Shown: in pieces, positions 29,895 to 56,607 of the stretch
Layout of the letters: each line of letters starts with the position of its first letter
Position numbering within the stretch: position 1 is the stretch's first letter
Origin: Bugula neritina
Taxonomy: Eukaryota; Animalia; Bryozoa
Length of the DNA: 64,000 nucleotides
Assembly: GCA_964035545.1 (NCBI GenBank)
Contig: OZ037768.1
Location: 21,125,700 to 21,189,699 of the forward strand
Direction: 5' to 3'
Notes under the pieces: generated by a model
The model's database searches: none
The model's input: only the letters and a program-made list of their open reading frames with translations
What the model was told of the DNA's origin: nothing
Program-made: the position numbers and the translations under genes

Positions 29895-30531
29895 ATGGCT
29901 GAGAGTGCAGTCAGCAGACCAGATGAAGGTTCCGAATAGAATAATAAGCTTATTCTAATAGAGTCGATGAAAATAAAATTTTGAACAATCATGGCTTTAA
30001 CTAATTTATAAAATTTTAAGATTAGAAAAAATAATATCTTTTATGTTTTGAACAAAAATTATTGATGTAATTGTTGGAATTTTATTTTTAAATTATTCAT
30101 CAAGATTATTGGCTACTTGTAATAAAACTATAAGATAGATAATATTTGTAAGATGACAGTTCATCAGTATACACAGTTCATATACAGAGCAACATTGTAG
30201 ACTAGCATCTAGAAAGATCAGTGGTTAGAATTAGTTTTCAGCTTTTTTGTTCATTGCTAAAGTTTGTAGTATTTCATCCTTTATATTTTGTAGGCTTTTA
30301 CAGACTCTGGTTTGGATGTGATGATGCGAGTTTCCGAAAGAACTGGAGAGGGGAAGTAACAGCAGAATATACCATTAAAAGATACACCATTCAAAGGGTA
30401 AAGCAGATTCCTGAAGCCAGAACTGCAACACACCTCATCCTATTTGAACAAATTCCACCAGACATCCATCTTCTCTTTCCACAAGTCACTCATCTCAATG
30501 TTAAATGGCCTCAGCTATCTTCCCAACAAAA
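29895..30531 (+). CDS. Putative N-terminal exons 1-2 of the Roco-caspase gene
   Basis: [12 protein letters not shown]|[12 protein letters not shown]...[25 protein letters not shown]; acceptor ttttgtag at 30293; donor AA|GTAAGA at 30532 is phase 2, matching the LRR exons. Confidence 0.6.
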
Positions 30532-54500: not shown

Positions 54501-56607
54501 CATCAACAATTTATATTTTGCATAAGAATTTTGCATGAGAGTAAGTGTTGGCTTAGCATCATAGATGTTTAAAAGTAATTATTGTAAACTTGGTCCAAAA
54601 ACATAACAAAGCTAGAAGTTTTCCATGTCGATGAGATTGTCTAACTTGGCCATTTGAATTATACTTTTGGTTACAGGAAATGCTGTCCGCCATCAAGACT
54701 GAAGTGGAAAACCCAGATCATGAAGACTATGGGTGTCACATGTTAGTCATCATGAGTCATGGTAGTAGGAATAACCTGATTCATGGTACTGACATGAAGA
54801 CTATTGACCTTACAGATGTGTTTGACCTGCTCACCCCTCTCAACTTTCCTGGAATGGCTGGAAAACCTAAAATGGTGGTGTTGGAAGTGTGCAGTGGAGG
54901 TTATCATCCTATAATATTCCAAATTGTATCCAAATTTAGAGCTCATTGCTTAAACTAGGAACCAAATCAATTAAATTTTAAGTACATGAGCTGTGAAAAA
55001 TCAGTTATATAAGTATAGAAAAAATAGAAGAATAAAAAGAGCTTTGGGCCATTGTTGTTAAGTTATTATAAGTTTAAATCTGACATCCATGCATTAGTAT
55101 TTTTTGAAATTGTTTTCATATTAAAGGGCTTGGTTGTCTTCCAGTTTTATTATACTTTTATTATGTTTATTTTAAATAATTTTATATTTACTCATTATAT
55201 ACATGTATGTTATGTCGTCATACATTTTAGTTCGGTCAGATCTTGGGGAGCGCGGGATTGTAACAGATCCAAAACTTGCATCTGCTTCTAGCAAACAAGT
55301 TAAGCACGGAGTGGTGCCTACTCCACCCTCAAAGATTGGTGAAGTACAGCGTGAAGCTGAGTCTATGACTAGACTGAACTATGATGACTTGCTTGTGATC
55401 AAGTCTAGCTTTGAAAGTGAGTTGATTTTACCATAGTCTATTATTATTTTTATTTGTTTTTCTGCAAGTAAAAAATTGTTAATTTTACGTTCTTATAAAA
55501 TATTAGCAATCCATCATATCACATAAAATTAATTTCAGCAGAGGATTGACTTTGTAAAAACTTTACTCACAAAATTCTATACATACTTATAGGCTGTATG
55601 TACAAGTCAGTATTAATGAAGTAAGTTAGTCATCGTAACTGGAAAGTGCTCAATATGTTGAATAAACAAAGTCTAGCTAAAAGCATATAATTTCGTTATA
55701 AATTTTAGTTTCTTGTGTAAATTACACTACCAATGAATCCATGAAATGCATATTTATGTTGGCAAAATTGCATAGCCAGTAGTAATGTATTTTTATTTGA
55801 AATATATAAGGGTGTGTGCATGTGTATGTGTGGCATATAGAACAATTTGAAGCTGTGATAACACTGAATGTGTATTTTGTAGGTTTCCTTGCAATAAGAC
55901 ATGAGGTTTACGGTTCTCTTATGATCAGAGCTCTTGTGTCTACCATGTATAAACACGCTGACCACCGTCACATGTGTGAAATCTTCAAAAATGTAAGCTC
56001 TTTGTTAGCCTATTACACTCCTTGAAAAAATTTAAAATATTTTCACTGTTTAGCAATTTGCATGCACAAAGTGAATTGGTCATATAATTATTGTGAAGCC
56101 AATTCTCACTAAAAGTATTTTGAGCTTTTACACGGTCCCTTTGTTTAGTTAATAGCTAGGGGCAAGCCCTTATCTACTATACCACAATACCAGCCTGATA
56201 ATGTAGTGGCATTGGAGGCATAATGTGCTCAGTTATACAAACACCATAGTGTAGTTTTATTTATTAAATATTTTTAAAAAGTGATTAGCTATAATTGTAA
56301 AGTTTTTAGTAAACCTATGTGAAGTTTTGTATATTTTCTTGTTTACATACAAATTAAACATTAGCATTGAATTATGAAACAAAGTTTTTACTTTTTTATA
56401 AGAAGAATAAACCTTTTAATTTGATTTTATTTATTCCAATTTAATTTGTTGCCGTCACTAATATTATAGGTTCAGCAGAAGGTTAGAAAGACGTGTCTGA
56501 AGAGACGGCTACATGAAGGACAGCTGGTAGTTACATACGATACTCTGACACATGGCAGACAACTCTACCTCTTTCCTGGATTTAATGGACATAGACGGAG
56601 AGAGTGA
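29895..56607 (+). CDS. LRR-ROC-COR-caspase (Roco-caspase fusion), 16 exons, about 1451 aa
   Basis: Exons 29895-29928, 30294-30531, 31048-31188, 31952-32092, 32768-32908, 33789-33929, 34447-34587, 45689-45829, 46853-48987, 49286-49369, 49729-49919, 50376-50546, 54677-54899, 55231-55416, 55883-55992, 56470-56607. All introns are GT..AG, phases match at every junction, total 4356 nt, no internal stop. Exon 1 (GTTCCG donor) is least certain; the exon 13 donor (GTTATC) is weak but gives the expected caspase continuation. Confidence 0.85.
31048..31188 (+). CDS. LRR cassette exon 1 (141 nt, phase 2-2, two LRRs)
   Basis: ttacag|C..AG|gtaaaa; [46 protein letters not shown]. Confidence 0.92.
31952..32092 (+). 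CDS. LRR cassette exon 2
   Basis: [46 protein letters not shown]; AG/GT boundaries. Confidence 0.92.
32768..32908 (+). CDS. LRR cassette exon 3
   Basis: [46 protein letters not shown]; AG/GT boundaries. Confidence 0.92.
33583..33756. repeat. Near-perfect 81-bp-arm palindrome in an LRR intron
   Basis: 33583-33663 is the reverse complement of 33676-33756 with one mismatch. Confidence 0.95.
33789..33929 (+). CDS. LRR cassette exon 4
   Basis: [46 protein letters not shown]; overlaps ORF 33700..33933. Confidence 0.92.
34447..34587 (+). CDS. LRR cassette exon 5
   Basis: [46 protein letters not shown]; AG/GT boundaries. Confidence 0.9.
35219..36680 (+). mobile_element. 5'-truncated Penelope-like retroelement with inverted pLTR
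   Basis: RT thumb relic [10 protein letters not shown]; GIY-YIG ORF 35666-36259 (VIYQATV..YIGLSE..R..H); 35219-35320 inverted relative to 36500-36603. Confidence 0.92.
36509..36559 (+). ncRNA. Minimal hammerhead ribozyme in the Penelope pLTR (inverted copy at 35262-35312)
   Basis: TATTGTGC-CTGAGGA-GTGCC GAAGA GGCAT-GAAA-CTA T TAG-TA|GTACAATA. Confidence 0.85.
36812..36860 (-). ncRNA. Minimal hammerhead ribozyme of the second Penelope relic
   Basis: Minus strand CTGAAGA-T-GGGTAC AGTG GTACCC-GAAA-TATC|AGTGTAAT; the plus-strand copy near 44915 has a mutated core (CTAAATA). Confidence 0.7.
37598..37615 (+). promoter_or_regulatory. Primer-binding site, tRNA-Leu type
   Basis: TGGTGGCAGCAGTGGGAT, one mismatch from the complement of the metazoan tRNA-Leu(AAG/UAG) 3' end as I recall it. 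Confidence 0.75.
37628..38581 (+). pseudogene. gag: Gypsy gag with one in-frame TAG (38327-38329)
   Basis: Capsid-like APTFTG..EQFIQEF; in-frame continuation to the zinc knuckle [14 protein letters not shown]. Confidence 0.9.
38470..43101 (+). CDS. pol: Gypsy pol (PR-RT-RH-IN); TAG at 42448-42450 truncates the C-terminal tail
   Basis: LIDSG protease, YLDD, TDASD, HHCC, DDE, GPY; related copies read SVQNEQRLKPY across this stop. Confidence 0.95.
38530..38574 (+). promoter_or_regulatory. -1 ribosomal frameshift signal (gag/pol)
   Basis: G TTA AAC followed after 5 nt by a perfect 10-bp stem CGGCCCGCAG / CTGCGGGCCG; pol is in the -1 frame. Confidence 0.75.
43126..44196 (+). CDS. Spliced accessory ORF3 of the Gypsy element (C2H2 zinc finger + coiled coil)
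   Basis: Exon 43126-43150 (MSYDNRSW G|GTGAGT); intron with TACTAAC branch point and ttttcag; exon 43415-44196 in frame; [21 protein letters not shown]. Confidence 0.75.
45256..45455 (-). mobile_element. About 180-bp Gypsy integrase fragment inserted in an LRR intron module
   Basis: Minus strand [37 protein letters not shown]. Confidence 0.9.
45689..45829 (+). CDS. LRR cassette exon 6
   Basis: [46 protein letters not shown]; follows an 11-kb TE-filled intron. Confidence 0.9.
46853..48987 (+). CDS. Large exon: terminal LRRs + ROC GTPase + COR
   Basis: LRRs ([18 protein letters not shown]), pre-ROC cap [11 protein letters not shown]-loop GNTMAGKTS, switch I Thr (DETT), G3 DMGG followed by [10 protein letters not shown]4 THKD, COR-like [13 protein letters not shown]. 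These motifs are typical of Roco proteins such as MFHAS1/LRRK. Confidence 0.92.
50376..56607 (+). CDS. Caspase (peptidase C14A) domain exons 12-16 of the fusion gene
   Basis: [26 protein letters not shown], catalytic [16 protein letters not shown] (QACRG position), small subunit [17 protein letters not shown] ... Q...DTLT..QLYLFP. Confidence 0.93.
53370..53690 (-). mobile_element. tRNA-derived SINE-like sequence(s)
   Basis: Two minus-strand A-box-like heads (GTGGTGTAATGGTTAGCGCAC; TGTAGTGGTGAGTGCGCC..GATTCAA); no full cloverleaf seen. Confidence 0.5.
54035..54265. repeat. 20-22-bp intronic minisatellite (ATTGAACATATATAAGATCACC-like)
   Basis: About 10 degenerate tandem units. Confidence 0.85.

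Follow-up and report, generated by a model that had tools for sequence, protein, structure and literature searches.

An intact Roco-family gene with a caspase domain in the bryozoan Bugula neritina: structure, relatives and a proposed mode of activation

The DNA analyzed here, referred to as the window, is a stretch of 64,000 nucleotides from the bryozoan Bugula neritina (GenBank assembly GCA_964035545.1, contig OZ037768.1). Its central feature is a gene of 16 coding exons on the + strand, at positions 29895-56607. The gene encodes a single protein, predicted to be cytosolic, in which an N-terminal cap, a leucine-rich repeat (LRR) array of six cassettes, a Roc-COR GTPase unit, an acidic linker and an animal-type caspase follow one another. 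The gene is real and intact; it is a Roco family member by testable features, and its caspase is identified by fold and catalytic dyad, with uncertain specificity. We consider it very likely that LRR, Roc-COR and caspase are fused in one gene. The family it belongs to, expanded in bryozoans, probably consists of receptors for cell death or immunity.

Gene structure and transcript evidence

The joined coding chain measures 4,356 nt and translates into 1,451 aa with no internal stop. All 15 of its introns are GT-AG, and none of 20,000 random AG-anchored chains with equal exon lengths was stop-free. An earlier, sequence-only reading had described an unbroken, phase-consistent exon chain from the Roco exon to the caspase, which this stop-free chain confirms. 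The GC content of the window outside the transposons is about 30-35%.

Exon 1 (29895-29928), which supplies the start codon and 11 codons, is the least supported; it has an ATG in good context and a GT donor, and is in frame with exon 2. Exon 2 (30294-30531) encodes the N-terminal cap, which is conserved in the family and lacks a Pfam match; tblastn matches to it lie upstream of three paralogous metagenome loci, L004, L006 and L007 (E 1e-9 to 1e-13). Six LRR cassette exons follow, each of 141 nt, in phase 2-2 and with two repeats, so built that dropping any one keeps the frame. The first (31048-31188) is supported by Pfam LRR and by cassette comparison, and the next four (31952-32092, 32768-32908, 33789-33929 and 34447-34587) by the open chain and cassette comparison. 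The sixth (45689-45829), preceded by about 10 kb of intronic transposon sequence, is supported by the open chain and by cassette joints of RNA type. The large exon (46853-48987) carries the last LRRs, Roc, COR-A, COR-B, a low-confidence insert and a conserved Cys-rich end, as determined by Pfam, AlphaFold and Foldseek.

The large exon is joined to the caspase by two linker exons. The first, of 84 nt and phase 1-1 (49286-49369), is conserved in L002, an intact second Bugula copy from the published draft genome; it had been called indispensable in the earlier reading, and skipping it indeed creates a stop at codon 1085. The second (49729-49919) encodes the acidic linker, with a pre-caspase helix at its end, and is supported by the open chain, RNA-type joints and the model of the relative P0041. 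The caspase itself occupies five exons: the first large-subunit exon (50376-50546), the catalytic exon (54677-54899), the intersubunit linker with the start of the small subunit (55231-55416; open chain and alignment to relatives), a small-subunit exon (55883-55992; local alignment to P0041) and the last small-subunit exon with the stop codon (56470-56607; open chain and alignment to relatives).

Transcript evidence was sought by placing contigs of four runs on 45601-51000 at 85% likeness, exon 1 and the last three junctions lying outside that stretch. The joint 45829/46853 was seen in X8 and X11, 48987/49286 in X9 and X11, and both 49369/49729 and 49919/50376 in X8, X9 and X11, which represent three studies. 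The check proposed earlier, RNA across 48987/49286/49729/50376, thus found all three joints, mostly in contigs from alleles or paralogues, which documents splicing at the family level. Cassette-to-cassette LRR joints are likewise present in RNA-type contigs. By eye, a loose end of X8 past 50546 agrees with the start of the catalytic exon at 54677 in 27 of 30 letters, and a loose end of X16 resembles the 3' end of exon 2 joined to an LRR exon. Two points count against this transcript support. The contigs are short, none covers the whole chain, and most are 85-95% alike to the window copy and therefore come mainly from paralogues or close alleles. In addition, three of the four runs are RNA by guess only, with the intron-skipping joints supporting RNA.

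It is highly improbable, in our view, that the locus holds two neighboring genes, with a short caspase gene of its own after an LRR-Roc-COR gene that stops at 48999-49001, or that the copy is dead and riddled with transposons. Large transposons do lie in two introns, the draft B. neritina annotation does split the L002 gene, and a weak joint, 49001/49283, anchored by just 20 letters on the shorter side, occurs in a single X8 contig and possibly comes from a stop-containing isoform. Yet RNA-type depth falls to zero in the introns flanking the linker exons, linker-crossing joints occur in three studies, the frame is intact, full-length relatives exist in RefSeq, and even the split model P0019 still joins COR to the caspase start. 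A caspase-less isoform using an alternative donor at 49002 was rejected, as it was seen in one weak contig and the GT is absent from L002 and L009. The single-chain architecture proposed earlier is borne out by the splice joints, by full-length Watersipora relatives in RefSeq and by the exon layout kept among the copies.

Roc-COR unit, linker and caspase

In a Pfam profile search run exon by exon, Roc scored above the cut-off in the large exon (E 5.9e-7), LRR was detected among the exons of the gene, and COR-A (0.004) and COR-B (0.04) stayed below the cut-off; COR is above it in the relatives P0030 and P0033. The AlphaFold model of the large exon (predicted local distance difference test, pLDDT, 87) is matched by Foldseek to LRRK1, CtRoco, LRRK2 and the isolated CtRoco COR domain, and the COR identity of the domain after Roc is confirmed by this predicted fold. 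The best full-length Atlas neighbor of the model is an MFHAS1 cluster (TM 0.77), and an Atlas feature search returned only Roco/MFHAS1 clusters, all below 0.9. The GTPase motifs comprise the P-loop (G1; aa 477-485, 47163-47189) with Lys483, a switch-I Thr, DxxG at aa 531 and THKD at aa 600; the G, K, T and D positions are kept in 60-62 of the 62 family members, and the residue following DxxG, Asn in the window copy, is variable. The protein therefore has the features of a Roco protein, namely a Roc domain with motifs G1-G4 and a COR domain directly after it. Its P-loop domain is a Ras-like Roc GTPase and not a NACHT/NB-ARC ATPase, and Pfam found no kinase domain in the scanned exons or in full-length relatives.

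Two side observations concern the end of the large exon. At 48770-48920 (aa ~1013-1060) lies a low-confidence, duplicated-looking insert that differs from L002 in length and sequence, with a ratio of nonsynonymous to synonymous differences (pN/pS) above 1 on few sites; RNA contigs also diverge there. A CxHC motif and further Cys at the end of COR, invariant throughout the family and also found in amphioxus MFHAS1-like proteins, may form a zinc site.

In the full-length AlphaFold model of the Watersipora relative P0041 (pLDDT 80, predicted TM score, pTM, 0.64), LRR, Roc and COR are followed by a helix, after which an acidic stretch of ~40 residues forms a disordered tether; a short helix then leads to the caspase, which is folded. 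The tether carries the motif D/E-L/V/I-S-D in the window protein (D-L-S-D, aa 1131-1134, 49782-49793); all nine Watersipora relatives have it too, as do 5 of 7 genomic relatives, and the background rate is 0.027 per 95 aa. Similar to a DxxD caspase site as well as to a CK2 site, the motif is a candidate for self-cleavage or phosphorylation by CK2.

Peptidase_C14 scored above the Pfam cut-off in the first large-subunit exon (E 8.4e-9) and the catalytic exon (E 1e-10). The closest PDB matches of the catalytic exon are CED-3, caspase-8 and caspase-2, the best hits of the caspase also include caspase-3, and the predicted caspase fold of P0041 matches caspases 3, 6, 7 and 9. The catalytic His1261 (54758-54760) and Cys1305 (54890-54892) are kept, as are Arg1203 and Arg1375 of the S1 pocket, and the small subunit is complete; the caspase is thus whole, with dyad and both subunits, as had been claimed from the sequence. 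No death-fold match (CARD or DED) was found by Pfam in any scanned exon, and Roc-COR occupies the prodomain position. The protein is neither an NLR nor a classical initiator caspase, though it probably works like both combined.

The pentapeptide around the catalytic Cys is unusual. EVCSG is common to the window copy, L002 and L004, the variant of L006 and L007 is ETCSG, and Watersipora members have the canonical form; this spread over several loci makes it a subclade trait and not decay of the window copy. Within the Arg-Gln-Arg of the S1 pocket, both arginines are kept and Gln is changed to Glu in this subclade. Since Glu replaces the Gln of QACxG, Asp-specific activity cannot be assumed for the window copy. 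Further changes are the loss of the small-subunit Arg in L004 and an HACSG motif in L003. All these changes would suit a weakened or re-specified caspase in the EVCSG/ETCSG subclade, serving as a decoy, a c-FLIP-like heterodimer partner or a non-Asp protease, while the QACSG members kill. We find this doubtful, as the window copy keeps His, Cys and both S1 arginines and its caspase core is under strong purifying selection; moreover, Drosophila Dronc is active despite a non-canonical pentapeptide.

A side observation concerns L003 (2163-6758), which is 81% identical to L004 in Roc-COR and only 43% in the catalytic caspase exon. Its catalytic exon, with HACSG, is nearer to Watersipora types (up to 57%). 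A swap of the caspase module between paralogues is possible, as is a chimeric metagenome contig.

Relatives, selection and origin

The closest named protein is B. neritina EB796_016200, 93% identical in the COR part. L002 and the window gene agree in exon layout, but one sampled intron is only ~83% identical, and the two copies may belong to cryptic B. neritina species, or be divergent alleles or close paralogues. Full-length or nearly full-length Roc-COR-caspase proteins, with His and QACSG, are present in the RefSeq set of Watersipora subatra (P0041, P0072, P0079, P0062 and P0183-P0188); P0041 is 31% identical to the window model over ~1,100 residues, reaching through linker and caspase. Two further B. 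neritina members, P0207 and P0138, bear the name CASP8 in their source database. In all five paralogous metagenome loci examined (L003, L004, L006, L007 and L008), the Roc-COR exon has the same phase-1 donor and is immediately succeeded by caspase exons. The search matched about 29 distinct JGI clusters, and six could be assigned to metagenome samples associated with Bugula (five from JGI, plus L005).

Selection was gauged by pN/pS against L002. The caspase core has a ratio of 0.14, and its small subunit one of 0.08; COR-B is at 0.12, COR-A at 0.27, Roc at 0.40 and the LRR tail at 1.16. In a comparison of 11 cassette exons, pN/pS is 1.0 at exposed LRR positions (1.79 in the second repeat) and 0.51 at framework positions, values that are uncorrected, come from non-independent pairs and are no more than suggestive. 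The caspase core is under purifying selection and the LRR surface positions are not. Cassette number also differs, at least four in L002 against six in the window copy. As read from these sequences, the LRR array is assembled from interchangeable cassette exons with variable exposed positions.

Roc-COR sequences were placed in a FastTree phylogeny (120 sequences, 13 near-duplicate rows removed, midpoint root, long branches). All 19 caspase-linked rows fall on one side of a branch with a support of 100 (105 rows), and amphioxus, Owenia and unassigned animal Roco proteins fall on the other. Caspase was absent from 14 non-bryozoan Roco relatives and from the downstream sequence on three of their contigs. 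A single origin of the caspase fusion in bryozoans is the simplest reading, because the caspase-linked rows group together and the 14 outside proteins lack a caspase. On the same reading, a bryozoan-specific expansion of MFHAS1-like Roco genes would have gained the caspase C-terminally before Bugula and Watersipora diverged. Searches with long Watersipora queries, limited in word and length and thus weak evidence of absence, returned no protein with Roc and caspase outside bryozoans, and a scan of metagenome loci gave only two distant Roco loci, both without caspase.

A literature search that covered few subscription journals found no description of a bryozoan Roco-caspase family. The draft annotation of L002 (7530-13462) gives the gene as two proteins that lack the catalytic exon and the LRR-Roc part, and this contributes to the family having been overlooked. 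Separately, a non-bryozoan LRR-Roc-COR exon (P0166) on L012 is followed downstream by an open reading frame (ORF; 7207-7911) with faint resemblance to a trypsin-type peptidase, and the pair may be a further Roco-protease fusion in animals.

Other features of the window are mainly repetitive. An intact LRR cassette exon (2129-2269) and a broken one (2921-2967), the latter interrupted just before a Gypsy element, stand 27 kb upstream of the gene, with homologous introns and no Roc-COR exon between them and 29895; they may be what is left of a paralogue upstream, or else serve as alternative 5' exons, being phase-compatible with the cassette at 31048. Between LRR cassettes 5 and 6 lies a Gypsy-type long terminal repeat (LTR) retrotransposon (37290-44784), absent from L002, with 300-nt LTRs that are 97% alike, a gag-like ORF, an unbroken pol ORF of 1,326 aa and an extra ORF of 271 aa (43381-44196) with Cys/His motifs and no Pfam match. 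It is nested within inverted arms of 218 nt that are 99% alike (36759-36976 and 44791-45008). An element at 35217-36604 has perfect inverted ends of 105 nt and an ORF of 197 aa that by eye resembles a Penelope-type GIY-YIG endonuclease fragment, with no Pfam match at 0.01. A 3.7-kb insertion (50714-54459) in the intron before the catalytic exon is bounded by terminal inverted repeats of 20 nt (CAC...GTG) and has a target duplication of 2 nt (TG); it contains a 22-nt tandem repeat at ~53930-54320, and L002 has the empty site. Degraded copies of related Gypsy elements lie at 2992-5900 (+) and 59787-60950 (-), and a strand-skewed minisatellite array of ~5 kb with ~30-nt units (14355-19700) gives spurious ORFs.

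Known systems and a proposed mode of activation

The LRR-Roc-COR-caspase architecture is not categorically new. In bacteria, Kaur et al. 2021 predicted conflict proteins of the type LRR-AP-GTPase(Roc)-COR, whose C-terminal effectors number at least 24 and count caspase among them; these share with the window gene the domain order, fast-evolving LRRs and multiple paralogues, and a role in countering invaders was proposed for them (PMC8195603). Unlike the bacterial genes, the window gene has introns, an animal-type caspase and a Roc-COR unit nearest to animal MFHAS1-like proteins. Since both the type of the caspase and the nearest named relatives of Roc-COR point to animals, the bryozoan fusion is probably independent of the bacterial one, as judged from a tree of non-bacterial sequences. 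In animals, Krasovec et al. 2024 briefly mention one gene of the annelid Owenia fusiformis, CAH1787638.1, a caspase of the caspase-Y clade with a ROC prodomain (PMC11463336). By that description it is likewise an animal caspase with Roc in the prodomain position; LRR, COR and function are not reported. The earlier remark that no characterized animal example came to mind thus stands within the literature searched, and has to be qualified by these precedents, the predicted bacterial proteins and the Owenia ROC-caspase.

Other Roco proteins differ in what follows the core. MFHAS1/MASL1 and the expanded MFHAS1-like Roco proteins of invertebrates (amphioxus, Aplysia) share the LRR-Roc-COR core and have effector tails that vary by lineage; for example, LRR-Roc-COR-TIR proteins are described in Aplysia (PMC9334734). 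LRRK1, LRRK2 and DAPK1 also couple Roc-COR to an enzyme in one chain, but theirs is a kinase and they are conserved single-copy genes. Brown algal ROCO genes, proposed immune receptors, have shuffled phase-2 LRR exons, of 72 nt and one repeat as against 141 nt and two repeats here; they have no caspase, and a few have a trypsin-type peptidase (PMC11378527). The accessible text of these four articles (PMC8195603, PMC11463336, PMC9334734 and PMC11378527) contains no experiment on any Roco-caspase. We found no published description of the bryozoan family, and new here are the D-L/V-S-D linker motif, the subclade-wide change from QACxG to EVCSG and a possible caspase swap between paralogues.

In function, the nearest parallels are the NLR inflammasome and the Apaf-1/CED-4 apoptosome, which combine a repeat sensor, a nucleotide switch and a proximity-activated caspase; the bryozoan protein differs in having a GTPase and not a STAND ATPase, an expected dimer and not a ring, no death-fold adaptor and a single chain. 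Initiator caspases are activated by induced proximity, and the earlier suggestion that ROC-COR dimerization could switch on the caspase directly is plausible. We lean slightly towards a mechanism, built on analogy, in which COR dimerization activates the tethered caspase, the GDP-bound or empty dimer being ON and the GTP-bound monomer OFF. The protein would be an adaptor-free initiator caspase, in which Roc-COR stands in for the NLR/Apaf-1 platform as well as for a CARD/DED prodomain. The resting protein would be a GTP-bound monomer with its flexibly tethered caspase off. A ligand on the LRRs (a pathogen, symbiont, damage or non-self cue) would shift Roc-COR to a COR-B-mediated dimer, GDP-bound or empty, bringing two caspase domains together for activation and self-processing, possibly at the conserved D-x-S-D motif and perhaps gated by CK2. 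The outcome would be cell death or inflammatory cleavage. In CtRoco, the dimer is formed by the C-terminal half of COR (PMC6337361), and the protein is a dimer when empty or GDP-bound and a monomer with GTP (PMC5714945); the switch logic of the bryozoan protein would therefore be inverted relative to a classic GTPase.

Several observations weigh against this mechanism. D-x-S-D is frequently followed by L, V or P, residues less than ideal for caspase cleavage, and the window copy has EVCSG for QACxG, with Glu1303 for the conserved Gln. An immune trigger rests on analogy and on a modest pN/pS from few non-independent pairs. LRRK1/2 dimers can be autoinhibited, so the dimer need not be the active form. 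A fused protein might also follow GTP-ON or release logic, with an autoinhibited COR dimer or a closed monomer at rest that ligand or GTP opens, freeing the caspase, for example by cleavage at D-x-S-D, to self-dimerize or to signal non-lethally like caspase-8/Dredd. The conserved motif, the GTP-bound open monomer as the 'active' form of CtRoco, and a caspase that is not rigidly docked in the P0041 model (pTM 0.64) all fit this logic. It is nevertheless unlikely, in our estimate, because initiator caspases need proximity and a monomeric released domain is a poor enzyme.

Instead of a microbial cue, the trigger could also be an endogenous or conspecific one, as in metamorphosis, the regression of polypides or allorecognition between colonies. 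Large LRR expansions over many loci more commonly track pathogens, and we think an endogenous or conspecific trigger improbable, though as it overlaps with the dimer mechanism it is a rival only in part. In its favor, the cassettes differ in number and sequence between close copies, and apoptosis in the allo-incompatibility of colonial animals, including bryozoans, finds mention in PMC8195603.

Activation by COR dimerization, which we prefer, bears on an old question of Roco and LRRK2 biology, namely which nucleotide and oligomer state signals. Because a caspase works only as a dimer, the natural fusion would be a built-in, protease-readable reporter of Roc-COR dimerization. For bryozoans, we tentatively picture, as a reading that falls somewhat short of probable, a large and diversifying repertoire of single-chain death receptors, in which LRR cassettes would sense non-self, the Roco dimer cycle, ON in the GDP-bound or empty state, would replace the NLR/Apaf-1 ring, and exchangeable caspases with differing S1 pockets would set the output. 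If true, animals would have a third platform on which initiator caspases are activated, a GTPase-gated and adaptor-free route, and the family would offer a first molecular handle on bryozoan immunity or allorecognition.

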